Assembly: GCA_003693705.1 (NCBI GenBank)
Contig: RBZT01000247.1
Coordinates: 1-35,615 of the forward strand
Reading direction: 5' to 3'
Source: Polymyxa betae A26-41
Taxonomy: Eukaryota; Protista; Endomyxa: Phytomyxea
DNA length: 35,615 bases
Shown here piece after piece: positions 1,135 through 35,615 of the stretch (its first letter is position 1; each line of letters starts with the position of its first letter). The translations under genes were made by a program, and so were the position numbers. The notes beneath the pieces are model-generated. The model was not told the DNA's origin. It was given only the letters and a program-made list of their open reading frames with translations, and did no database searches.

Positions 1135-1711
1135 TTGCCTATCTTGAGTTCTGATACCTTGCCTCAGATAAAGCCTGAGGAAAGGTGGGACGGTTGGCAA
1201 GTCCTAGATCCTTCCATGACGATTGACGGCGTTGACTGTTATCGCACAGAACAGAGGCCCTTGGATAGAGCATATTTCTCCCACAAACTGAATCACTCTG
1301 GTTTACGATACTTAATTGCTTTATCCATGGGTCCTAGCAGAAAAAAAATTGTTTGGTGGGGCGGGGGTGTCCCTTGCGGCGCAAACCCCGACTTAAAACT
1401 GGCCCGCGAGATCTTTATCCAGGTGCTGGACCCAGGAGAAAGAGCTCTTGCTGATTTAGGATTTCAAAATGCACGTTTCTTCAAAAGTCCAATCCCTCTT
1501 GCTGCCAATGATTGGGATAAGTGAGTTTAATATGCAGCACAAAGCAGAAATGGCCTGCCATAAAACAATCAATAAGCGCATTAAACAGTTTGCGATCCTT
1601 GGCGACTTCCGACATGTGGAGGATGCTAAGCACAAGCTAGTCTTTGCTGCAATCGTTAACATTACTCAGTTGTGCCTGGAGGACGAACCTCTGTTCAAAT
1701 CGCATTTCTAA
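1135..1711 (+). pseudogene. Harbinger/ISL2EU-like DDE (DDE_Tnp_4-type) transposase remnant
   Basis: Motifs IDGVDC, YFSHKLNHSGLRY, PCGANPDL, GERALADLGF; after a frameshift near 1510, HKTINKRIKQF...FRH...HKLVFAAIVNITQL. Confidence 0.75.
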
Positions 1712-2213
1712 TTAAATACAGCCTGCCTAGCTTTTAAATGTAATAAAGGAGGTAAATATAGTCTGCACAGAAAAAAATTACCATAAATGATTTTTTATGT
1801 GTGTAAAGTAAACTATAGCTCAGTATTTATGACACGCAAATTCGTATTGTGTTTACTTAAAGCATCTTCCTTGTTCATAACAATATGCAGGAAATGCAGG
1901 AGAAACCCCAACCTCGCTCAACCGCCGAAAGTGACTACGAAAACAATAAAAAGGGCCACACGAACAGCTGCAAAATCCACCCCAGCTGTCATGATACTGC
2001 AGGCGCAGCCTGTGTAGTTTCTTGTTTCTGTAACTGCATTCGAAATAAAGTATCGTTGCATGGTCAACTGAGGATAGCTCAGTTCGATCAACGCCGTTTT
2101 TAAATCAACAACTCAGTTCTCCTTCGTCGTAGCTCTTGCTTCCTTTGTTCCTGTCTTCGTCCTGTTTCTCATACTCTAACGCTATTGTTCTTATATTCTT
2201 AGTTTATTCTACG

Positions 2214-2364
2214 TGTATCGGTTTCGTAACCAATTAAGCAATCTAAGCGCTTAGATTGCTTATAAGCTGGTTCCCAGGAGCCGGAACACATTTTTGTATC
2301 GGTGTGGGAACCAACTAAGCAATCTAAGCGCTTAGATTGCTTAGTTGGTTACGAAACCGATACA
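2214..2364. repeat. Nested inverted repeat with two long perfect palindromes
   Basis: Outer arms TGTATCGGTTTCGTAACCAA / TTGGTTACGAAACCGATACA; 28-bp palindrome at 2235-2262; 42-bp perfect palindrome at 2309-2350 with the same core. Confidence 0.95.
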
Positions 2365-2616
2365 TACGTTGATTCGTAACACCAGCCAGGGCTTAAAATT
2401 TCTTCAAAAAGAATGGAATTTCTCTTAGTATTCCTAAACCAACAAGCAGACTCGCAAGGATTTCGCTTCCGTCGATGCGAAAAAGATGGAGCACGAATTG
2501 ACTCTGCAACATAAGGGCCCATTTGGATGCCACGGAATTTCAAATCCGGTTTTTCCGCAAACTAGTTTTTCCTAATGATAAAACCGGTTTGCGCAAAATA
2601 CGGGTTTACGTAGGTT

Positions 2617-4011
2617 ATGTCACACCAAACGATCATGAGTTCCTCTGATGATGACGAATACGATTCTCTTCAGCGAAGAAATCGAGCTGCGGCATGCCTC
2701 GTAGGAGAGTGGTATGTCCAATCTTACTGTCTCAAGGAGCCATGTCGAACATCGGGGCTCCAAGGAGCCGAATGGGTGATAGAATTAATGAGCGGTAACC
2801 CAGTTCGTATATACGAGACCCTTCGCATGAGTACACCCATTTTTAACAAGCTCAAGCGTGAGCTCGTGATATCGGGAGGTTTGCAGAGTACACGCAATAT
2901 GGATGTCGATGAGATGTTTGCAATTTTTCTCTTTATTGTGTCCCACAGCTCTAAAAATAGGGATGCTCAAGAACGTTTCGAAAGGAGCGGAGAAACTATC
3001 AGTAGGAATGTCAATTTTTGGTTATCTATATGGCCAATAAATTCCCATATTTATTAATATATGCAACAGGGTACTCCATCGGGTTACTGATGCAATTTTC
3101 TCACTGGCAGAAAAATATATCAGATTGCCTAGGCAAGACGAATTATTGCCAGTTATTTGAGATAACCCGAAATTCTTTCCTTTTTTTAAGACTGCCGGAT
3201 GGCCCTGGATGGGACTCACATTCCAGCGTTTGTTCCATCCAGTCCAGCACATCCTTATAGGAATAGGAAGGGATTCTTGAGCCAGAACGTCCTGGCTGCT
3301 TGCTCTTTTGATTTATTGTTCACCTATGTATGTGCTGGCCGGCCGAATGGGAAGGATCTGCCGCAGATAGCTCTATTCTATCCGACGCCTACACGAAAAG
3401 ACTTACAGTTCCTGAAGGAAAATACGACCTGGGCGATGCAGGGTTTGGCTTAGCAACGAAGCAAGTAGCTTCGCTGTCAAGTAACTCCCTATCGAGGCGT
3501 ACGATATCACTTAAGGGAATGGAAGCAAGGCAAAAGCAAGTAGGTTACCGAGCGGCGGGCAGCGTTCTGCCTCACACTCCCAAACAGCTGATTGTATATA
3601 GACCGCAAGATTATACAGAGCTCTTCAGTCTTCGACATTCGCAAGCAAGAAATGCCATTGAGCGTATTTTTGGCATTCTTAAAAAGAGATTTCCAATTGT
3701 CGTGCAGGCACCAGAATTTTCGCTGCAGATGCAGTCGAAATCGGTAATTGCATGCTGCGTCCTGCATAATTTCGTAAGAATTTCCAGAGGTATTGGGGAA
3801 TACTTCGAAGACCTGGTATCACACGTACAGTTTCAATAATAGTCAATTTACCTCAATCAATAGGCTAAAACCGACAATCTTGAAACTGATACAGCCGTCG
3901 GCGAACCCTCCAGCCGTTTTGATGAACCTACACAAGCGAAAGATTTCAGAGACAGGATTGCAAAGGAGATGTGGCTGCAATACGAAGCTGCGCAGTCAAA
4001 ACAAACGTTAG
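2617..4011 (+). pseudogene. Harbinger (HARBI1-like) transposase with introns and frameshifts
   Basis: LRMSTPIFNKL, DAQERFERSGETISR, ALDGTHIP, YRNRKGFLSQNVLAACSFD, WEGSAADS, DAGF, ARNAIERIFGILKKRF, CCVLHNF, spread over several frames. Confidence 0.88.
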
Positions 4012-4257
4012 TTCATTGTAGGATACTGAATGTAAATTTAGATGCAGCTGATATCAGCTCCGATCTCACTGTAAAGCCAGAAAGCCAGTAGCATCAGCGA
4101 TGCGGCTAGCGCTTCGCTCTCTTCCTCTGCGGGGTCAGATTTTGACCTGGGAAATAGGCTTCATCTTAGGGTCGCTCGTCCTCAACGTGTGATGGAATAG
4201 CCAAGCACGATTGCTCGATCGCCGGTGATCGTTTTTATGTCAGTAAAAATATTAGAT

Positions 4258-5416
4258 TCAAATATTGCTGAGGTCATCCCCGATCTCACTCATCAGCCAC
4301 AACTTCCGACAACGATTGGCCGGCATCGCGACGAACACTGCTGCCTTCGCTTTATCGGTCATCAGGCTGTATGCCTTCACAGTCTGCATATCTGTTAAAC
4401 AATCGCTGTATTGCTGGGTCAAGAGTTGGATAGCTCTCTCGTGAACGGTAGGAGCCATCGCTGTTGAAAGATTATTAATCGCGTTAGCGATTCGGCTGGC
4501 TCAAGATGGCCGGTCACGGGCAGCTGGTTTCAAAGTCTGTGGAGAAGGCGATGGAATTTCCCGACACTGCTGTTGGTGGGAGATTTTCGCCTTTTTCGAA
4601 ATCGATGCTGTGAGATGGGCATCCACCTTAACAGCGGCGTGAATATCGGCTGCAGGTGTTACCGGAGCCTTGTTTTGGCCAAGGCATATCCGTTTTGCCG
4701 GCGTTCGTGCCTGACAAAGCGATACCGAACTCTCGTCATCGTCGTCAGACTCTGACGATTGGGCTCCATTGTTAAAGGCACTATCAATAATGTCATCAAT
4801 TTCCTCTCGCGATCGCCCATCATTTGACACAGGTGGAGATGCAAGTGGAAATCCTAAGCTAACTGATGATACAGCACGGGAGCCTGTCGCCAAGTTGTCA
4901 CTGAACAGAGCATTAAGCTCATCATACAACGGTAACGTGAAGTATCGATATTGTTTCGCCTTCGGATGGCTCTATTCAACTTGTTGAAGGCAAACGCGAT
5001 TTTATAGGGTAAATATACCAGACCTCGACGTAATCATTCCAGACTTTAGCTTCGGCTATAGGTAAGTTTCTAACGGTATCCCATCCCCAGCCCGAATTCT
5101 CTTTGAGCAGTTGAAAGATAGTGTACGAAGCTTTCAGCTGACACACATGCCAATTAGTTACTTCCAAACTTTCATAGTTTATCTATTGGAAATACCTGGT
5201 TATTACGTGTTTTCAACTGTTCACGATCATAGCTTAAACTATATTTGATATTAAACTGAGAGGTCACCTCTGTCCATGCCTCTTTTTTAAAGCCACTATC
5301 TGCCTTCTTGCCTTGATTCGCTTGGTTTTGAAGCAAGGAAATAAGCAGAGAGTCCCTTTCTTGGTCCCAAAGACCCAAACATCCCGGGAAGTTTTGGCCT
5401 CGGTTTTCGTTTTCAT
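4258..5416 (-). pseudogene. Harbinger accessory Myb/SANT-like DNA-binding protein (spliced, frameshifted)
   Basis: WDQERDSLLISLL...GKKADSGFKKEAW...QLK, SGWGWD...VWNDYVE, YDELNALFS; C-terminal AAVFVAMP...KLWL. Convergent with the transposase. Confidence 0.82.
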
Positions 5417-5647
5417 GATTGCTGAAACGGAGACAAAATTGAGAGAAATAAGGAGCTCGGAAATCGGATTTGCGTGGGAAATCCTGGTCGGAATAGAACT
5501 TTGAAAATCCCGATTCCGCTCTCGAAATCGGGATTTTCAAAATCGGTTTCTCGGCAGCCAAACGTGTCATTTCTACACCAAATCCCGATTTCACGCAAAA
5601 TCCGTCCTCGGAATCTGGATTTTGCGTGGCTTCCAAACGCGCCCTAA

Positions 5648-5809
5648 ACATGATATTGAGTACGACGGAAGCTGGAAGAGCAAAGTAGTGCACACAACCA
5701 GCTGCTCGCTACAAAAGTGGCAAAAGCCAACCTCGTTGCTAGTTTAATGGCGACATGTGCTACAATAGAACAAATCTAGCAAGCCTTACAGCTTGCATTC
5801 GACAACTAG
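5648..5809 (+). pseudogene. C-terminal relic of an older Harbinger accessory gene split by the 2515-5644 element
   Basis: Translates HNQLLATKVAKANLVASLMATCATIEQI*QALQLAFDN*, which aligns by eye with the C-terminus of ORF 20510..21844 (NDHRLATQIAKGNFIADLMKCGRSVTEIKEMVSMVFHDS*). Confidence 0.55.
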
Positions 5810-20509: not shown

Positions 20510-21844
20510 GTGTCTGTCTCCAATATATCATCCATTTCTACTATGAACGCACCGGTTATCCAAGCTGCCGCTTCGCAGCCACGTGCGGTGGCTGCTAAAG
20601 CGCCTCGTAAAGTCGGGGTTACGACCACCGAACCTGAAGATGGTAACGACAGACGTCGTCACACCAGTATGACGGAATTTTTAGCAATGGTTACATTTAT
20701 CGAGAAGCCCGAAAATTTCGCTTTATTAGAAGGTAAAGCGGCAAAGAATAAGTCAGTAGTTTCTGGTCAGAAATTGACCAAAATGTCTGGATACAAGTTG
20801 CTGGCCGAGTTCGTTAATGCCGTTATCGAAGAACAACATCGAAAATGGACGCCACAACTTGCGAAAAGTCGTTATACTAGTTATAGGGACAAGAAGTACA
20901 AAGTTGCCAAGAAAATTTCGGCACCAGGTTCAACTGGATACGGTATTACTGAAGAAGATCGTCGTAAGAACATTACTACCATAGCTGAAAAGCTGGAGAG
21001 AATTTGTCCTTTCTACGAACGAATGGACGCTGTTTTAGGCAGCCGACAAAATGTCACACTTGCTTGTGTTGTGGAAGCCGGCGTTCCGCCAAACATTTTC
21101 CCACAGCCTCCCTCTGTTATTAACAGTGATGACGACGACGACGACGACGACGAAAGTGAGAAAGATGACGACAGTAGTGACGATGATAACGATGAAATTG
21201 GTGGACAAGAAGATGCATGTAACCGAGACGACAATGAAGTTGCAGATGATGAGATTGGTAAACCGAATGGTACCGTGGCCGGGGTCGAGATCGATAGCCA
21301 ACCAACCAAAGAAAATGACGGTAATGATTTGGACTTGCTTGATGTCGCAATCAATGACGATTCAGTGTCGTTCTGGAATCGATATGCGGTTTCCGAAGAA
21401 GATCGTTTTTTAACTGACGGGTGGCCTGATGACCAAATTCAGACGGACGGAACTCCCTGCGCTTCACAGGCTGCCAAGGATAAGCCTTCATCGAAACGAT
21501 CGCAAACGAAAAATAAGCGCAAGAGCGCTGCGAAGACAGAGATGAATGCCACACGGCTGAGTTTCCCCTCGGAGCCGACCCCGCAGATTAAGAAGGGTAA
21601 AACAGACTTTATAACGGCATGGATCGAGATGCAGAGTCAACATCTTGCTTTGGAACAGGAAAGATCTCGGCGAGATCTGGAGTTTCAGCAACGACAGGCA
21701 GAGCTCAACGCTGTGACACTGAAAAATGATCACCGGTTGGCCACTCAGATAGCCAAAGGCAACTTTATTGCTGATCTCATGAAATGCGGTCGTAGTGTCA
21801 CCGAAATCAAAGAAATGGTGAGCATGGTTTTTCATGACAGTTAA
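20510..21844 (+). CDS. Harbinger accessory Myb/SANT-like protein with acidic linker (uninterrupted 444-aa ORF)
   Basis: WTPQLAKSRYTSY...GYGITEED...KLERICPFYERMDAVLGSRQNV; (GAC)n poly-Asp tract; C-terminal coiled coil. Confidence 0.78.
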   Translation: MSVSNISSISTMNAPVIQAAASQPRAVAAKAPRKVGVTTTEPEDGNDRRRHTSMTEFLAMVTFIEKPENFALLEGKAAKNKSVVSGQKLTKMSGYKLLAEFVNAVIEEQHRKWTPQLAKSRYTSYRDKKYKVAKKISAPGSTGYGITEEDRRKNITTIAEKLERICPFYERMDAVLGSRQNVTLACVVEAGVPPNIFPQPPSVINSDDDDDDDDESEKDDDSSDDDNDEIGGQEDACNRDDNEVADDEIGKPNGTVAGVEIDSQPTKENDGNDLDLLDVAINDDSVSFWNRYAVSEEDRFLTDGWPDDQIQTDGTPCASQAAKDKPSSKRSQTKNKRKSAAKTEMNATRLSFPSEPTPQIKKGKTDFITAWIEMQSQHLALEQERSRRDLEFQQRQAELNAVTLKNDHRLATQIAKGNFIADLMKCGRSVTEIKEMVSMVFHDS

Positions 21845-21895
21845 CCACGACAGTGGCGTATATAAACATCATCACTGATCAGTGCAGAATTTCTC

Positions 21896-21969
21896 AAAGG
21901 TCTCAGGTATTTCGGTTTTTGTGATGCTTTCCAGAAGCTATCACAAAAACCGAAATACCTGATACCTTT
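21896..21969. repeat. 30-bp stem hairpin between convergent transposon genes
   Basis: AAAGGTCTCAGGTATTTCGGTTTTTGTGAT - 14 nt - ATCACAAAAACCGAAATACCTGATACCTTT (29/30 complementary). Confidence 0.95.
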
Positions 21970-22009
21970 AAATCATCTGTCTCTTATGCCCATATCTATA
22001 TTGGATAAA

Positions 22010-23311
22010 TTAAACAAAATCCCAGTACTGCAGTACTTTCTGTTGAATAGATCGTCTCCAATCCGAGATAGCTCCATTGCTGTGCGTTCCGTAATCTTCG
22101 TTGTCACATGATTCTTCTGAAATTATTCCCTGCACCTCTCGGTTGTCCATGTCATCGGCAGGAATTTGAAGAGCTGTAACCATATGATGCAATGCACAAC
22201 AGGCCAGAATCCAGTCACACGCCTTGTTGACATGAATGGGCTTGTTGATCGAAACTGGAAGCCCTCGAAGGGACTGCCAGCGAGCTTTTAAGATGCCGTT
22301 ACCGTGTTCTGAGACAGCACGCCCGCTAGACAAGCGTCTATTAAACTCCTGATTTTCAGGAATTGAGGCAGCGGGCTGCCGGTACGGCACCACAATGAAT
22401 CGCGTCATGCGAAAGCCGGAATCTCTAAATTGATACTGACCTGGTGAGGAAAACCGCTCTGGGTTCTTATGAACGTTTGTTGATTCCTAGATGGTTGAAT
22501 CATGCACTGATCCAGGCCAACCAGCTATCGCATACCGGATACGACGATTATGATCGAACGTCAACAGTACGTTCATTGAATAGCGGCATTTGCGGTTGTA
22601 ATACACTTCGCCATCTAAGCCAGGTTTTTGGTGGAGAACCACATGTGTTCCATCAATCGATAGAATGCACCCTTCGAACCCGTAATGGCGGTGATTGTAA
22701 GAGCTTAGAGATCTACGTTCCAAATCATCTGGCCATGAATGTAGGAATGCTGGAGAGAGAGCAAGGCAACCAGAATGAGGTCAGTATACTTTACAACACT
22801 GCCGTATCCAACTCCTTTGGAACGAGCCACCATTCCAATTGCGGAGCCGTTTCCGTAATGTCCCAAACGATGAAGCGCACACGCCAGCTGAATCCAAACC
22901 GCTCGCTGGGGATGGGCAGATTCATTTTGGAATACAGGATGTCCTTTGAATATGCACGTTAAATAATCTATCTAGCTAACGTAGTCGCTTTCTTGCGGAA
23001 TTTACCTTCAATTTGCTTTAATCTGTAGCAGAACGTTTCCTGGCTGACCCTAACTTCTTGTTTAAATTCTTCTACTGCTAAGTTTGGCACAGTTGCAATG
23101 CGCCAAGATTCTTGGCTAATAACCGCCGAGGATTGATGTTCCGATGTTGATTGAGGATGATTTTTAACTCGACGAGCTGGTTAATTGAACTCTGGACCTT
23201 ATCGGCCCTGGCACGGCAGCTAAAGCGAAGACTGGAGTGCTCGATAGCAAGGAGGCGAATGATTTGGTCAATATCTCGTAGTAAATGAGCTCTTGCCGAG
23301 TAACGAACCAT
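22010..23311 (-). pseudogene. Harbinger transposase, disrupted
   Basis: IDGTHV, YYNRKCRYSMN, GWPGSVHDST*, DSGF, RAVSEHGNGILKARW, CCALHH; in-frame stops and frameshifts. Confidence 0.9.
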
Positions 23312-25949: not shown

Positions 25950-26265
25950 GTGTGAGTCATCCTACCCTGACGCCGACCAGACCAGCAGACCTTATATCGC
26001 GGCACGTCAGCGACAGTGGCTGTTCTCATCCAGCGGTTCTATTGGTCTTCGATGCGAGTCGACGCCGCTGATTTCGTCCGTCTCTGTTTAACTTGTGTTC
26101 CTGTCAAGGCCGGCGACGTTGTCCCCCGTCCTTTTGGCGCTACCGCCAACCCAACTCAAGCTAACGAGATTTTGGATTTCGACTATCTCTACATTGGCCC
26201 CTCCAGGTCCGACTACAAACAACTGCTTGTCGTACGAAATCGCCTTTCCGGTTATGTTGATATTG
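25950..26265 (+). pseudogene. Ty3/gypsy integrase fragment (zinc-binding domain and start of core)
   Basis: RFYWSSMRVDAADFVRLCLTC...VPRPFG...NEILDFDYLYIG...LSGYVDI, cut off abruptly. Confidence 0.85.
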
Positions 26266-26531
26266 TGTCAATAAGGGGTATCAAACATGCGCTTTCGGTA
26301 GCTTTTAACGTCTGCTTTTAAAGGGTCTTAAAAGTGCTTTTAACTTTGCTATTGATGCTATAAGTCAATGAAAAATAGGTATTTTTCCGAAATTGTTTCG
26401 CAAGTTTGCGTGGCCTCCACTTTAAAAGCGCTTTTAAATTTTAAAAGCATCTCCCCCCGTACTCCGTGGAGTATAGGATAAGATGGAAGGATAGAAAGTG
26501 AAATGTATTTTGCTGGGAACCGACGGGTTAA

Positions 26532-29500
26532 CTCTTAAATTTTATTATAAAAGGTCAATAGAATGGAAGATTTCCAACCTAAATCTGTAAGGAATAGGAT
26601 TGGCAAACATTTTTCGCTTCTCTGCTCGGCACGGAATGTGAGCTAAAAAATTGCGATGGTCGGAATTTTTTATCCTACCTGATAGGATAAAAATTGTAGG
26701 TTAGCAGTCCAATTTATCGAGTTTTATCCTTCATCATAGGCCAGAAACAAACAGGATTTATTATATTGAAACATAGGCAGAAGCCTGAACTTCAGGTACG
26801 ACGTCGAGTCGATCGACTTCGGGCGGGAGTAACGATTGCATTGCTTTGAGAGCGACTTAAAGGGCCCTCATCTGCAGTTCTCTTTCGAGAAGGTGGTGCT
26901 GGACGATTAGAATGCCCTCTGGCAACTACAAGATCCGTTGACGTAGCACAAGGACTATTCAGAGCGCTAGCTGTGTGCCATTGATCAAAGCAGCTCTGTT
27001 GCTGAGTGCTGCCGGTAACGAATCGTTCAACTTTGCAAAGAGGCACTTCACAAATAGCACAGCTAAACTTCGTTTTGAAACCTAACCGTGCGTGCTTTGG
27101 ATCGTTATGCGTTTTTGAGCGACAGCACCAAACGCAGCTTTTCTGTTTTTCGTTCAGCACAGCAACGTGACCTAGATTACCGTTTTTTCGCTTCCTGGCC
27201 ATGTCTTCGTTGGAGAAAAAGATGGTTCGTTTGTTGTATGTGACTGTCGAGCTACGGTAGTGATCACCGACCCCAATTCATTGGTCGGCTGTGGAATCTG
27301 TGTGTTGTCATCACTTGTGGTACCGTTGAATGGATGCTCTACGACAACGAGCTTTTGAAGGTCTGTTGACGCGTCCCGACAAAAGTCTGAGAAACGGCTT
27401 AGTGAAGATTTGTACTTCTGAAAGTCGCGAAAAGTGTGACACCGAGTAGGATTCGTCAGAAACTCAAAGGACTAAACAGTATCAGAATCGTAAGAGCATC
27501 GAACGTATGATTGTCGTACCTGCAGCAAAAGAAGCGATTGGTGGGCATTATAAACCAACGTCATCAGCAAACGAAGCCAGATGGCTGCTACAGGATTTAA
27601 GCAGTAATGCACTGATTTACAGTTTTTCAACACTCGGCTGTAGACATTAACACCACCTTTGATCTTGTTCCAGAGAGCTACGAGAAAAGGAACAATGTTT
27701 TCCTGGAGGAAGAGGCCTGCAACGCGTCTCAATCAATTTTACTACTGCTCTCCACAGCGCTAACTTGCACTCAAGAGTCTGGGAATCTGTACAAAATCCT
27801 AATTCTGATTCAGAGAATGCTGGAACAGGAATTTGCGGGTTATACACCCAATAAAGATATTTCTGTTAAATAAACGTGACAGCTTGCTGATATTTCGCTC
27901 TTAATTCCAAACAACCTCGAATATGAACCACTCAAATGATGGCAGAAAGCGTTGCAGTTACGAAAAAAGCGTCATCAAGATCGCTACAACACATATCATG
28001 AACTAGCTGAGCACGATAGAAATTTTTCGGTATCGATTTTTTAAATGTGACGGGATCCTGAACAATGTCTATAAATTGAAAATTTCCGAACCTGATCATA
28101 ATTGCTCTGTCGTGCTCTTCAGATCGATCTCGTCTAGTGAGTGTTTTGAATTCAACACAGGCCAAAAAAGATTCACTCTCAGATTCAGCGAAACAAATTG
28201 CATCTGGAGAGAAAGCGGCAGCTGGTTGGCCTTTACGATGAAGCAGACCATATTCTTTCACTGATCGGATTTTATAGCCAGAATTGCCTTCAATGAAAGG
28301 CCGAAACCATTTGAGAATTTTTGATTCATTCATAGATCCCAATTTCATTGCAGTTGTTTTCAAAGGACTCATAAAAAAACATTTCAAGAGACAAGCCTCT
28401 ACTGACTGAGCTTCGCCTTCCCCTTCACTATCATCCAGTATTCGTTTGATCAAAGCTGATTTGTTACCGCCGACCCTCAAACCTTTTGCTTTACAGATCT
28501 CTTTCAGATCCGCCACAGAAAGAATTTTTAGCTCGTCTTCAGAATACACGCGATCAGCGGTGGGGGTCTCACTCTGGCTGGCTATACTTGGAAGAACGGA
28601 GAGACATACTTGACCAATAGACAGTCAAATATTTGTGTAAAAACAGAAAACTCGCTTGCACGAGGGTCGACGTCTCCAGCTCGCAACATTGTCTGTGCTA
28701 TCGAGTTAAAAACAGCCCAAGCTGCAGTTCCAGTAATCCTGCCGTATCGAAGTAGAAACCACTCTGGAGTACGCTGCTCGTACGTCAGCTGTTCAACGTT
28801 TCCGGGTTCAAAACGCAGAAGGTGCTCGTCGTCAGTCGGAGAAGTGGCAGTATCGTTGCCCGATCGCGAGACGAACGCCCATTTGCCAGGCCCAGCCAAT
28901 GGCAACGTTGTGTGTGCTAAAATCGTTCGTCCTAAACCAGTCCGATGGGCCAACGCAAAATGACGCTGCGATGCTCCAGCCAGCCCGGATGGAGCCCGTT
29001 GCATCCAAAACGCGCATCGAGCCCCTTCCTCGGAAATGAGTCGCTGAGACGAATTGGCATGGCTGCCATAGGTAAACGGAAACGACGCCATTTTCTTTGC
29101 TGTTCCAACAACATCAGCACCGATCTCTAACAGTCGCGTTATCACTTCGCCTTGGGTTCCACCGTATCCTCTATCAAAAGCGACTAGGTTTGGAATTTCC
29201 ACCTGTGATTGAATAGATGCCCCCGATATCGAACTAAGCAGAATATTGACACAGTCTAAAACTGATTCGCCACGAGCCCCCACATGGCCACCTAAATATA
29301 GCCCAGTACATAAAAAAACAATGCTGTGATGTATAGCGCCCATGCCCTTAGTAGGGTTGTTAATATGTGAAAATCCCATAGAGTCAACCTTTCTAGATCG
29401 AAGCCGAAGCAGGTCGTCGTCCATGGAAAGAATAGAGAAACGTTCAACAAAACCGTTTTCGGCTGAAATTCGCCGAACTAGATGCAAAGCCGCTGCAATG

Positions 29501-30382
29501 TCTCTATCATGCTTCAGTGGAGCAGTCCAAGTAGATGATGAGATGTCGTTTGAGGCAGAACGGTTTTGACCAAGAGCACGAAGAATCTGGTTTGTGTAAT
29601 TCCTACTGTCTGGCTAGGATAGAAACCGACGTTGGCTGGATCGAAAAAACGACCAGGCGAGCAGCAATAAAAGGATAAAAGCAATTCGACCTTGACGAAC
29701 TGTATTATTTCGGCCGAAGACTCACTATCACTAATGTGACGATTAATAAAAGTCTTCATGTGGCCAAGGAATGCAGATCCTAGCCACAACTTCAGTGCAT
29801 GAATCGGCTTGATCTTCTGGACCCGGCGATCAATTCCTCTTGCCCCAAACATTCCCTTCAGAAGAACCTTCCGGACGATCCGGACCTCTTCCCGAGCTCG
29901 TTCCAGTAGATAAAGCTCAACGTTATCGACTTCAATGTCCTACTCCTGGGTTGAGACACCTGTCCAATCCTCAACTGATACGCCGTCATCCTGTTCCCCG
30001 AAAAGATCGAGATCAGCTATAAGGGACGCTAAACGATCATCTCCAATTAAGCTAGCATCGTCTGAAGACATGTTTGATGGCAATAACTTGGATTCACGAA
30101 AACAAACAATATCAATGATCGGTATGCAGATCATGATCATGCCGTACTACCCATATTTCTGCTGCTCGTCATCGAAGCCTACTTTTGAAAATCGTCACAG
30201 GCCTATTGATAGGGAAGCGATAGCAGTTTATAGATGCGAAATCAGAATAAATACAAAGAAGTTACAAGCACGTGAAATGTCAGATTTTATCCTACAGAAG
30301 GAATCGTATAGGATAAAACCTTTGAGCTGTCGCAATCACGAATTTATATTTTATCCTACCAGGTAGGATAAAATACACGAGG
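26532..30382 (-). mobile_element. piggyBac-like DNA transposon (decayed)
   Basis: TTAA at 26528-26531 and 30383-30386; palindromic TTTTATCCTA...TAGGATAAAA motifs at 26667-26693, 30284-30318 and 30347-30375. The left boundary is uncertain because its TIR is degenerate. Confidence 0.68.
26792..30071 (-). pseudogene. piggyBac-like transposase containing YqaJ/lambda-exonuclease and SAP domains, with C-terminal Cys-rich domain
   Basis: LSMDDD, VAFDRGY, VVGT, then QRTPEWFLLRYGRITGT, SAP (LSVADLKEICKAKGLRVGGNKSALIKRI), AMKLGSMNE, FSPDAI, VEFKT, YRAQ, then WNKIKGGVN and CVWC...TKFSCAICEVPLC...CFDQWH. Several stops and frameshifts. Confidence 0.8.
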
Positions 30383-30479
30383 TTAAGATTTAAAAGCGCT
30401 TTTAAACCGATGCGGCGATGCCACGGTCAATTTTAAAAGCGCTTTTAAAATTCTCCGGAACGCCAACTTTGATATCCCC

Positions 30480-30609
30480 TAATATTCCGATCGGACCTGA
30501 CTAAACTCCGTTAATCGGAAACTTTCCGAGTTTCGAGCTAACCTCCGATCTCAGTGATATATAAGGGTTCGTATCGATCTAATATAATCATTCTGCATTC
30601 ATCATTACA
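30480..30609 (+). repeat. Major part of a short gypsy 5' LTR (first bases at 26266-26274)
   Basis: Removing 26275-30482 gives TGTCAATAATATTCCG...CATTACA (~136 bp) with a TATATAA motif, upstream of gag. Confidence 0.6.
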
Positions 30610-30688
30610 ATTGTAGCATCAACTTTAAAGTAGACTTGCTACAAAGATTTCTATAGCTGCACTTTGCCATTTCAAGACTTGATATATT

Positions 30689-33600
30689 ATGGAGGACATG
30701 GCGAATATGACAGACAATGTGGAGGATCAGTCCGCGCACAATTCGGCCGATGGCGGAGGTGAACCGCAGCCTGGTAACTCGGTTACTGACAATGGTCAAC
30801 ACGATCGAATGATGCCGCAAGCCCCAAATTTATTCAACGGCGCATTCGTGATCAACCAGGAGACACCGCCGCTGGATAACGGCAATTCTCGTGCTGAACT
30901 TGCCGCATAGTACGTCCAAGCGAACGATTATTATCTTCGGATGATTGCTTCTGGGAATGCAATCCCTCTTCGCGCACTGTTTCATCCGGACAAATTATGC
31001 TACATCGCGAATTGGGAATTGTATGAGCACATGGAGGTTTCTTTGCTGACGGACAAAATCTTCAGTGACTACGTATACGTTGGACGTCAACTTGCTCAAG
31101 AATCGACCGACAGTGTTAACCATGTCCAAGCTGCCATGGCTAGCTTGAAGGTGGAGTTCACTCCAGGAATGCCGCTGTCGGTAGTTGAAAAGTTTATGCA
31201 GTCGTTTAAAAATATCCTGCAGCGGTACCAGCTTGTCAGGGATGCCGGGCGAAAGCGGGCTAGAGTAGGATTTGTCGAAAGCGAAAACGAATGTATTAAT
31301 AAAACGGAGGTTAGCGGAATGGAATCTGTCTGCTGTCCTAGTTCGCTGAAGTATATCTACGGAATGTTCTTAGAACATTCTTGACAGAGTAGAATCACGG
31401 CCTTTCTCAAGTTTTGACATCTGGCGTCTGCAGTGGAACGCTCTAGTAGGGCTCCGATCGGGTCGGGTCGGGTCGGGTTCGGTCGGATACCAGCCCCATA
31501 CCCGAACCCGACCCGACTTTTCCGGGTCGTGTACCCGACAATTGTATGGCGAGAGAAAAAATTCACAGAAACGCTGTATAAACATCTTGATTGGCTGCGC
31601 TATTACCTAACGTCAATGCACTTAGTGTCTCAGGCTGAAGGGAATGTCGACGCAGTCTAAAAACATTGTCCGCAGTTAAAAATTTCTTAAATCCGACACG
31701 GGCAATCCAGGAATGGACAGTACTCGCATGCGAAGTAATGTAATATAAAGGATCAACAGAAGAATCCTCGCAGCGCAAGTTCAAATAATTGTCGGCCTCG
31801 TTAATTATTGGCCTTCACAAACGCATTGAGAGAACATCGAGGTACGTGAAAAATGAAGAATCTTCACCAGCTGCCCCTGTGGTAGCGGTGGGGACCTGTT
31901 CAGCAGTACCAATTTCTCCCAATCGGTCACTTTTGCTCCCAATTAGAGATTATCGGAAGAGAAACAGGTTCGATAAGGTCAGAGTAATCAATATCGAAGT
32001 CCATTATTTTTGAATAGTTGCGAACCCGTCGGTGAAGAAATGGGTGCTTTGTTCTTGCGGGTTGTCATATTCGTGACTGCAATGATGCATCTTGACAAAA
32101 TACACAAATGGGAGCTGAACGTAAATCCGTGCGCGGTTTATATATACATCTCAAATTATAACCGTCGGATACTCGACCCGCTACCCGAACCCGACCCGAA
32201 CCCGACCCGACCCGGGTGGCAAGACTGATCAGCGAAAACCGAAGGGGACGAGTGACCAGCGCGTGAAGTCCCAGGTAAGCAAAAAGGACTTGAACCCATC
32301 ATCGAAGAAGCGCCCGCGATCGGAGTCGATTGATGCGGAAAAGGGCAAGAATGTGTCCTGCTTCCAGTGCCATGAGGTTGGACATCCTCGGGGTCTTTGT
32401 CCGCAGTTGAATAAAAAATCCAAGAAAGTTTCGGATTATACTTTGATCTGTGCTTTGAACTTAAATACTGATCGAACTATTCTAGTTCAAATTGGATCAG
32501 GGATGACAGTTCCAGCAATCTTGGATAGCGGTGCTAATCAGGTTTCTCTTATTCCTAAGCGTGTGCTTAATGAAGTGATCAAGTCTGAACTTGATGACTT
32601 GAAACTTGTAGAGTTGGATCTGTCGATTTTGATTAAATTGGGAGACAATAAAAGCACTGTAGAGGTTTCTGAGACTGTGACTTTAGATATCAAGATCCTT
32701 GCTCAGGCTGGACGAGTGTTAGTTACGGATCGGCGATTCTTAGTCTGGGATGTGCCAGGAGATGAAATTATGAAATCATCTTAGGTAGTGACATCTTACA
32801 GTCGTTAGGGATTGATCCTTATAATGCTATAAATGACTTGGCATGTGTTAGGCAGAAACAGGCAGGATTGAAAAATAGTATGGAGCCTGTACTTAGTAAT
32901 TCAGAGACTGAGGTTATCCAAAGCAGTATTGATAAAGCTATGGAAAGAGCAAGTCATTCTGGTTTAGATAAACACTGGATTTCTAAGTTAGAAACATTAC
33001 TCTATAAGTACACTGATGTATTTAGGGTGAAAATGGGAGCAGATTTTCCAGCCAAAGTTACTCCATTTAAAACAAGTCTTAAGTCGAATGCTAAACCATA
33101 TAAATGCAAACCTAGGAAGTATAGTCAGGAGCAAAGTCAATTTCTTAAAATTTTACAGATGACTTAGTTGCCAATGGTTTGATTTATGAGAATCTCAATT
33201 CTGAGTGGGCTTCACCTGTGTTGATGGTTAAAAAAGAAGGAGGTGGTCACAGGATGTGTGTTGATTTACGTGCTGTAAACACCATGTCTGAGAGTACAGT
33301 ATGGCCAATGCCCTTTCTTGAGTCCATTGCTACTCATTTGGGAGATTCTAAATATTGGTTTAAGTTAGATGCTTTTAAGGGTTTTTAGCTTATGCCGTTA
33401 GCAGAAGAATGTCAAGAGATGTTCTCTTTTATGACAGATAGAGCAGTTTTCTCTCCGAGAAGATCTATTCAAGGAGCTTTGAATTCAGCTATTCAATTTC
33501 AATCCCGGATGCATGAAGTATTCAAGGATTTGATATTTGACAAGCTAATTATCTGGATTGATGATTTGCTTGGACATGCTGCGACGTTAGAGCAGTGGTT

Positions 33601-35290
33601 TGTCATTTTAGAAAGTGTTTTACAGTTGGCTTCACAGTTTAATATTAAATTCAATATTGAAAAGTGTGAGTTCTTTTCCACTGAAGTCAAGTACTGTGGT
33701 AGAATATTTTCTATTAGCGGAGTGTCTCATGACACAGCGCGAATTAAAGCTTTGATAGAGAAACCTCAGCCGAAAACAGCAAGAGACTTACAGCAGTTTC
33801 TTATGGCAGCTCAATGGATGAGTAGGAGTATCCCAGAGTTTAATACTAAGGTATATGCTTTACAGCAAGTTTTTGAAGAAGCTATGAAGGGACAGCCAGG
33901 TAGAACTAAGACGATTGCTAGACAAGTTAGGCTTTCAAGATATGGCTGGAGTCCTTTGCATGCGTTGGCTTTTGAGGAACTTAAGGCAGCAATTGCTCAT
34001 CATGTGAAATTGTCATATCCTAAAAAAGATATGATTCAGTGCGTGTACACTGATGCTAATGAAAGCAATAGTTCTGCAGTAGTTACGCAGATACCATTAT
34101 CGGATTTAGATAAACCTGTAGCGCAACAAAGACATGAAACTTTGGGATTCTGTGGACATAAATTCTCAGGCGCTCAATTGAATTGGTCAATTGTTGAGAA
34201 GGAAGGATTTGCAGTAGTTGATGCTTTGAATAAGCTTGAGTATTTGCTAATGAACGACAGACCATTTAAGCTATATGTTGATCATAACAATCTAACACAG
34301 ATCTTTTCCCCGTCTAATGTATCTAAGCCAGTGGCTCAGAAGTTACAGCGTTGGGCTTTAGAAATTCAGAAGTTTAACTATCAGATAAGCTATATTAAGG
34401 GTGAAGATAATGTGTGGTCGGATTTGATGACTCGGTGGGGAGCATCAACAGCAACTAGTGTTATTAAGGTTCAAACTCTTAGAGTTGCTTCGTCCGCAAC
34501 TTTAAAAAATATTTCAGTTGAATATTTTGTAAGACCATCACAAAAGAAGGAATTTGTGTGGCCTTCAGTGGATGAAATTCGAAAATCTCAGAATAAGTAT
34601 TTGAAATCAGCTACCTATGTAATGACGACAATTTAAAAGTGAGCAAAACGGGCAAGATAAAGATTCCGATTGAAGGCGCTGATCTTAGAATACGTTTGTG
34701 TATCATAGCTCATGCAGTAGGAAATAGTGGACATATAGGCTTCCAAGTTGCATCCGTTAAATAGGCCGAATATTTCATTGGCCGAATATGCATACTGACA
34801 TGAGAAAGTTGTGCAATAGTTGCTTACACTGTTCGCCTACCAGGGGTCGTATGAGAAGACCAAGGCCATTAGAAGAAGCGGTTCATGGGCAGTATCCAAA
34901 TCATGTAGCTTACATGGATTGAATTTATGTGATGCCGGCTGAAAAGAAAGGCTCACATAATTACCAGTGAGACGATCTCTCAGGCTACGTTAGAATTACG
35001 CCTGCTGCAATGCTTGATAGTATAGTGGATTGGAGAGCTTCATCTAGAACTCCTGAAGTCATACAGACTGATATGGCATCATATTTTATGTCTCAGGTCA
35101 TGAAAAAGAGTTTACCAAGAGGTGTAATATCATTTTACAGTGGCTTATGGTCATTATAGTAATGGTTCCATTAGGTAATCAATAAGCATTACCTAGCCCT
35201 GATCCGAGCTCTAATTTCAGAGCTACATTGGAATAAGAGTGATATATTGGCATTGGTTCAATAAAAATATAGATCATAAGCAGCACATCG
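30689..35290 (+). mobile_element. Ty3/gypsy retrotransposon gag-pol, decayed and interrupted
   Basis: Gag 30689-~31235; zinc knuckle CFQCHEVGHPRGLC; protease ILDSGA; RT ASPV...RMCVDLR, LDAFKGF*, WIDD; RNase H TDANE/EKE/DHNNL; integrase AH...GH...CxxC after RT-RH (gypsy order). No 3' LTR seen. Confidence 0.93.
31447..32227 (-). mobile_element. hAT deletion derivative inserted in gag
   Basis: TCGGGT/ACCCGA subterminal repeats near both ends; internal dimerisation-domain-like NVFRLRRHSLQPETLSAL. TSD not identified. Confidence 0.65.
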
Positions 35291-35615
35291 GACCATATGG
35301 CTTCAGGGCCTTTGTTTCACCCCCCATCTCCCATACAAAAACCTCAATAATCCACGTTATAACACCCAATAACCTTATTTTTCGACGAATCTTTGTAAAT
35401 TTAGGATAATTTATAAAAATATAGGATTTTCAAAAATTATTTAAAAAAAATGAAAATTATAATAATAAAATGAAATGTAAATTTTGTAATTCAACAGAAA
35501 ATAAAATGAGAGGAAAAATTTGTTATAAATGCGATTACCAAAACAACAAGCATAAACGGCAAACGGAAGAATATAAGCAGAAACGAAAAGACGCTGAAAA
35601 AAGATATAAAGAAAA

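Follow-up and report, generated by a model that had tools for sequence, protein, structure and literature searches.

The window analyzed here is a 35,615-nucleotide stretch of the Polymyxa betae A26-41 genome (contig RBZT01000247.1), and its positions 26792 to 30071, on the minus strand, hold a transposase pseudogene that encodes about 1,075 aa once spliced, as reconstructed by frameshift-aware alignment. The gene lies within a decayed piggyBac-type element of 3,928 bp (26455 to 30382, minus strand). From N to C terminus, it specifies the first two catalytic aspartates of a DDD transposase (D1 and D2), the N-terminal motif of a YqaJ exonuclease, a SAP domain, the PD-(D/E)xK exonuclease core, the third catalytic position (D3), and a cysteine-rich domain. 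The element belongs to an old, widespread protist piggyBac lineage in which a complete lambda/YqaJ-type exonuclease, itself interrupted by SAP, is embedded in a single transposase chain. An earlier note, made from the window sequence, had proposed a two-nuclease transposase of ~1,070 aa with this three-level nesting, and the proposal is borne out by the open reading frames (ORFs) of relatives, by profile comparisons, and by an AlphaFold model.

Motif re-location, together with Pfam matches to SAP and zf-Tnp_2, placed every motif listed in that note on the minus strand where it had been read, as are all coding features that follow. The acidic N terminus and the first half of the piggyBac dimerization/DNA-binding domain occupy 29430 to 30071; over this part, the family profile matches residues 126 to 232 of the piggyBac structure 6x67, and the alignment of the structural model begins at residue 62. 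D1 (SMDDD, first D; 29419 to 29421) aligns with the D of the piggyBat SLDE motif, and D2 (AFDRGY) is at 29173 to 29175. Beta strands that, judging from their order, probably correspond to the ordinary piggyBac insertion domain lie at 28870 to 29020 (approximate limits; strands 349 to 394 in the model of relative P0019). The N-terminal part of the exonuclease (28590 to 28810) contains QRTPEWF, beginning at 28776, and RITGT (28740 to 28726), with the motif residues Q28776, W28761, R28749, T28734, and T28728. D1, D2, and this first YqaJ motif share one uninterrupted ORF (28582 to 29487), as had been claimed. The SAP DNA-binding domain follows at 28433 to 28522 (PF02037, E = 1.2e-9), inside the exonuclease, whose core (27748 to 28400) carries FSPDAI (28213 to 28196), VEFKT (28156 to 28142), and YRAQ..H (28018 to 27998) and the residues E28327, S28210, D28204, E28153, K28147, Q28009, and H28000. 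D3 (WNKIKGGVN) is at 27646 to 27648, 509 codons from D2, and the C-terminal cysteine-rich domain (zf-Tnp_2) is at 26975 to 27154 (PF13842, E = 9.9e-6, above the cut-off).

Pfam was run on the separate ORFs of the window copy. The YqaJ match (PF09588) was weak and below the cut-off (E = 0.031), and no DDE match was found for the ORF carrying D1 and D2. PHROGs returned weak exonuclease matches only. A genome-wide search for PF13843 gave no match, a result of little weight since the controls gave none either.

The window copy is dead, with three stop codons (near 29940, 27932, and 27866), four frameshifts (near 29600, 28590, 27694, and 27266), and Asn in place of Asp at D3. An apparent fourth stop, the TAG at 27472, is the acceptor AG of an in-frame, 48-nt GT-AG intron (27472 to 27519): in two relatives, a GT lies at the corresponding codon and the acceptor context matches, and the intronless P0019 and P0180 read through this position without a break. 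An alternative genetic code was ruled out, since TAG, TGA, and TAA all occur among the stops. The N that the earlier note had reported at the expected D3 is indeed encoded (AAT, 27648 to 27646), but it is confined to this copy; relatives have Asp, as does a second copy of the element on contig C899 of the same genome. That copy is ~90% identical, is truncated upstream of the exonuclease motif, carries an insertion, and is in one frame across the break that precedes SAP in the window.

Relatives show that the arrangement is not peculiar to a broken gene. The window protein is colinear over 1,007 residues with its closest named relative, P0019 of Plasmodiophora brassicae (CEP03823.1), with 42% identity, and identity reaches 52% with P0017 (both by frameshift-aware alignment). 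A search with the D1-D2 ORF retrieved 338 representative proteins, many of them single ORFs of 940 to 1,391 aa. D2 and D3 are 488 to 783 aa apart in all 30 relatives that span both; in piggyBac the distance (D346 to D447) is 101 aa (PMC7351741), and no relative comes near this canonical spacing of ~100 aa. The exonuclease N-terminal motif is present in 70 of the 73 relatives that run far enough beyond D2. Pfam matched SAP in 19 of 37 family members and DDE_Tnp_1_7 in 8 of the 37. The YqaJ block is carried in frame and has no target-site duplication (TSD) of its own, so that the separate insertion that would have undermined the earlier proposal was not seen.

The AlphaFold model of P0019 has a predicted local distance difference test (pLDDT) score of 84.8 and a predicted template modeling (pTM) score of 0.78. 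Its top structural match is piggyBac, with lambda exonuclease next among unrelated folds. Residues 62 to 879 align with piggyBac 6x67 with a Z score of 27.6 and a root mean square deviation of 3.2 over 369 residues, and the family profile matches piggyBac both before and after the insert (E = 1.1e-9); the flanking parts thus have the piggyBac RNase H fold that had been supposed. Residues 414 to 762 align with lambda exonuclease (Z = 15.1 to 15.4) over 202 to 208 of its about 226 residues, with SAP looped out, and the insert matches the phage YqaJ profile (probability 97.1, E = 6.4e-11). The fold of the insert is also seen, at Z = 9 to 12, in herpes SOX/BGLF5 and in Mimivirus R354. The graft comes after the beta strands that make up the normal insertion domain and stops immediately short of the D3 segment. 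In piggyBac, the insertion domain lines the target-DNA channel (PMC7351741).

Both active sites are conserved. Across 36 long relatives with 22 to 44% identity to P0019, the exonuclease residues W, R, T, E, S, D, E, K, Q, and H are nearly invariant, as are the three transposase aspartates. The full YqaJ motif set is present in the PD-(D/E)xK fold, namely the N-terminal W..R..T(G/A)S followed by E, D, ExK, and Q. Unrooted FastTree phylogenies of 26 proteins (short fragments excluded), built separately for the transposase and exonuclease parts, had 14 of 23 splits in common and no conflict at support of ≥0.95. Such congruence is consistent with a single old capture of the exonuclease, passed on together with the transposase ever since.

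The ends of the window element, which the earlier note had not given, are 30382 and 26455. The 3' end was set by the C899 copy, which diverges exactly after ...GTACGGGG and continues with TTAA. The 5' end (30382) was set by comparison with an empty site, an intact copy of the miniature inverted-repeat transposable element (MITE) into which the element had inserted at a TTAA. This TTAA adjoins the 5' end (30383 to 30386); that of the 3' side is gone from the window copy, together with ~14 bp of the host MITE. The terminal inverted repeats (TIRs) are short and imperfect, with CCTCGTG on the minus strand at the 5' end (30376 to 30382) and CCCCGTA on the plus strand at the 3' end (26455 to 26461); elements of relatives begin with CCCC or CCCT. 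A 25-bp subterminal palindrome at the 5' end (30349 to 30373) has an internal copy near the 3' end (26668 to 26692), and relatives have palindromes of their own at equivalent places. These are probable binding sites of a dimer of the cysteine-rich domain, by analogy with piggyBac, in which such a dimer binds a palindrome (PMC7351741).

The host MITE remains as two arms, one at 26273 to 26454, with a AGGGGGTATCAAA-like TIR, and the other at 30383 to 30480, flanked by AAT duplications at 26270 to 26272 and 30481 to 30483. It is a multi-copy element of ~270 to 300 bp with TIRs starting with AG and 3-bp ANT duplications (AAT, AGT, and ATT). In these duplications it resembles Pangu-type PHIS elements, of which they are a signature (PMC4482050). 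The MITE arms were also considered as TIRs of the piggyBac-type element and were ruled out, as the empty site takes the form of intact MITEs and the arms are missing from the C899 copy.

Across the family, two-ended elements in genome assemblies had identical flanking 4-mers in seven of seven cases (four TTAA, two ATAA, and one TTAT). A predicted TTAT/TTAT pair at L045 was left out of this count because its 5' end is unlike that of the family. In the L039 family, a motif flanked by TATA proved to be an internal palindrome, and TTAA flanks the true ends. With single junctions added, TTAA accounted for 11 of ~30 junctions; the others were ATAA, TTAT, CTAA, TTAG, CTAG, ATAG, and CTAT, plus one uncertain ATAC. 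The junction search partly required a central TA, and the junctions found from copy comparison alone all have TA too. Of the features that the earlier note had named for a check, intact copies with the same domain order, TIRs, and 4-bp TSDs were found, but the strict TTAA specificity of canonical piggyBac was not. The family moves with CCC...GGG ends and exact 4-bp duplications at relaxed xTAx sites, which is new here. Canonical piggyBac integrates overwhelmingly at TTAA (PMC7351741), and at its rare non-TTAA sites the two flanking sequences are mostly unequal (PMC5381638). Related metagenomes have an element with an identical 1,130-aa ORF at several distinct insertion sites, which points to recent movement. 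Complete elements are 3.6 to 4.6 kb long and have one ORF.

Named hosts are P. brassicae, several Phytophthora species, the diatom Fragilaria crotonensis, the chytrid Phlyctochytrium bullatum, and the red alga Porphyridium aerugineum, and metagenomes also contain members. The diatom, the chytrid, and the red alga are represented by broken or partial sequences, which for the red alga come from transcriptome data. The P. betae genome itself holds at least a dozen further divergent members, mostly broken and with the same domain order, and copy number per family is low; several different members are clustered on each of contigs C669 and C476. A scan of viral and prokaryotic contigs by the N-terminal motif, of limited sensitivity, found stand-alone YqaJ genes only and no fusion. 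Metagenome assembly ERZ25039503 (L053 and L097) contains intact members whose ends are much like those of the P. betae copies, and, judging from these sequences, the sample may hold a close plasmodiophorid relative with functional elements. Among P0025, P0118, P0139, and P0094, some have long acidic linkers inside the exonuclease, and P0118 has apparent repeated SAP-like units; the exonuclease-internal site tolerates up to ~300 additional residues. In Phytophthora fragariae (L066, 6325 to 6681), an RXLR-domain gene lies ~270 bp past the called gene of a family member. PiggyBac-X repeats have been linked to rearranged effector genes in P. brassicae (bioRxiv 10.1101/2025.07.30.667784).

Other element fragments and repeats lie elsewhere in the window. 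Pieces of a Ty3/Gypsy-like retroelement, read from the ORF list, lie at 25950 to 26270 and 30483 to 35615, with the MITE between them; they include integrase-like (26016 to 26321) and gag-like (30750 to 31384) ORFs and a zinc knuckle, a protease, and reverse transcriptase/RNase H (32263 to 34636). A repeat of ~700 bp has (CCCGA)n-rich inverted ends at 31459 to 31517 and 32162 to 32214, and a similar repeat interrupts the transposase of the C899 copy (L016, about 2690 to 3380). Several fragments of Harbinger-like DDE and Myb-like ORFs are found at 1135 to 5693 and 20510 to 22408, and a long hairpin is at 21896 to 21969.

For the role of the second nuclease, the reading that we favor, at somewhat less than an even chance, is that the nested exonuclease trims a donor-derived 5' flap while SAP holds it on the DNA. 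As in piggyBac, the DDD core would excise the element via hairpins and then join the 3' ends to the target; after hairpin opening, both ends would retain 4 nt of donor DNA as a 5' flap. The nested 5'-to-3' exonuclease, predicted to sit beside the target channel and to be kept on DNA by SAP in place of the trimeric ring of lambda exonuclease, would cut back the donor flap, and the 4-nt gaps would then be filled by copying the new target. Donor and target would need no common tetranucleotide, and exact duplications of ATAA, TTAT, and other xTAx sequences would result. The piggyBac 4-nt flap is barely contacted by the transposase (PMC7351741). Under strict TTAA targeting, this flap base-pairs with the target, which makes DNA synthesis unnecessary; at mixed xTAx sites, the flap would usually be mismatched and would have to go, which favors a flap-trimming role. 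A combination of SAP with a PD-(D/E)xK nuclease is also found in FAN1, which processes 5' flaps. The nested layout may give the element a wider range of insertion sites than ordinary piggyBac has. The full proposition, that this is an undescribed piggyBac lineage of Rhizaria, stramenopiles, red algae, and chytrids whose second nuclease, within the core, processes the intermediates of its own transposition, is possible, with the balance leaning against it. If true, the outcome would be exact integration at relaxed xTAx sites by the element's own means or, alternatively, a gain of copies via forced homologous repair.

Several points weigh against flap trimming, which is our best guess from a comparison that covered exonuclease-bearing members of the lineage. 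Host flap endonucleases alone could be sufficient to remove the flap, the DDD core by itself could account for the relaxed targeting, and a complete exonuclease of 250 aa seems out of proportion to the removal of 4 nt. The seven two-ended sites are a small sample, from a search that partly required a central TA. Unequal flanks were also seen on metagenome contigs (ATAA/CTAT, CTAA/TTAA, and TTAA/TTAG); these are probably collapsed multi-copy repeats, because L100 and L101 have a common 3' flank and differing 5' flanks.

The strongest competitor, which we nevertheless consider rather unlikely, is the resection idea of the earlier note, which had linked it to single-strand annealing or recombination, in its likeliest form. 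The exonuclease would attack the broken donor site and resect its 5' strands, seamless re-ligation would fail, and repair from the sister chromatid or homolog would restore the donor and raise copy number. Lambda/YqaJ enzymes carry out processive 5'-to-3' resection at 5'-phosphorylated duplex ends, and the family retains the full fold and residues of the phosphate-pocket type. Seamless excision brings piggyBac no copy gain (PMC7351741), so that selection for resection is plausible. The missing ~14 bp on one flank of the window copy would also fit, but this loss, seen once, affects an arm of a MITE able to form a hairpin, and the seven other two-ended insertions have clean flanks. Donor resection leaves the relaxed target choice unexplained, copy numbers per family are low in the P. 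betae genome, which speaks against donor restoration, and no annealing or Red-beta-like gene was found in any complete element. Trimming of the 5' flap accounts for the target sites no less well than resection does.

It is improbable that the exonuclease acts outside the core reaction, destroying unintegrated ends or competing DNA as a form of self-limitation, or acting on RNA. Herpesvirus alkaline nucleases, which are related to the exonuclease fold, act on RNA, and SOX/BGLF5 and Mimivirus R354 are among the structural matches given above; lambda exonuclease, however, outscores the herpes enzymes. Accessory nucleases of unknown role recur in ISL2EU, KolobokE, and KolobokD (PMC9587614; PMC4482050). 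The graft in the window lineage, by contrast, lies within the catalytic core by the target channel and was never lost in 30 of 30 relatives, which points to a function tied to the transpososome. Still less probable is a purely structural or DNA-binding module that widens the grip on the target, with nuclease activity irrelevant. SAP binds DNA, and the insert is placed where the insertion domain contacts flanking target DNA (PMC7351741), but the metal-binding E, D, E, and K hardly vary even where the identity around them drops to 22%. Chance nesting of an exonuclease element that jumped into piggyBac, or an artifact of frameshift repair or assembly, which a broken copy in a pile-up of nested elements might suggest, has virtually nothing left to it, being refuted by intact relatives with uninterrupted single ORFs in the same order from many genomes, by the congruent trees, and by the lack of an internal TIR or TSD.

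By fold, catalytic triad, ends, and duplication length, the lineage belongs to the piggyBac superfamily: DDD in the piggyBac RNase H fold, a Cys-rich C terminus, CC...GG ends, and a 4-bp duplication. Like piggyBac of Trichoplusia ni (6x67) and piggyBat (9c0f), it has GGVD at D3 in members with an intact triad, a dimerization/DNA-binding domain, an insertion domain after strand 5, subterminal palindromes, and TTAA as the commonest site. It differs from them in having ~400 additional residues (exonuclease plus SAP) between D2 and D3, in its low identity (12 to 14%), in its xTAx targets, in its TIRs of 7 to 10 bp (12 to 19 bp are quoted for piggyBac; PMC5381638), and in that most members miss DDE_Tnp_1_7. 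The insert resembles lambda exonuclease and phage YqaJ (PF09588; 1avq, 3sm4, and 3syy) in its motif series and in its fold over nearly the whole enzyme, but it is split by SAP and embedded in a transposase. A ring-shaped trimer is unlikely to form inside a transposase dimer; the structural model is of a single chain.

No description of a nested piggyBac/exonuclease architecture was found in the searched literature, which did not include the definition of Repbase piggyBacX. That group was presumably built on red-algal and oomycete elements, and the window family occurs in both. The label DNA/PiggyBac-X has been applied to P. brassicae repeats (bioRxiv 10.1101/2025.07.30.667784). The window lineage probably corresponds to DNA/PiggyBac-X, known here by label and host only, and we therefore claim no new superfamily.

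A lambda-exonuclease-like or YqaJ nuclease, of stated unknown role, also accompanies the eukaryotic DDE transposons KolobokE and ISL2EU (PMC9587614; PMC4482050; PMC4122938). These belong to other transposase superfamilies (Kolobok and IS5-like DDE), whereas the window family has the piggyBac fold. The nuclease is downstream of the transposase domain in KolobokE and in a second ORF in ISL2EU but inside the catalytic core here, and Kolobok ends are RR...YY rather than CC...GG. In the window lineage, the nuclease shares one chain with a transposase of known chemistry and structure, and intact copies exist at several insertion sites, so that one point mutant could test its role. The answer would bear on how seamlessly excising elements gain copies and on what ties piggyBac to TTAA. 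Wider target choice also makes a piggyBac relative attractive for gene delivery; the window copy itself is a dead pseudogene. Counting ISL2EU, KolobokE, and the window lineage, eukaryotic DNA transposons have acquired a lambda-type exonuclease on at least three occasions.

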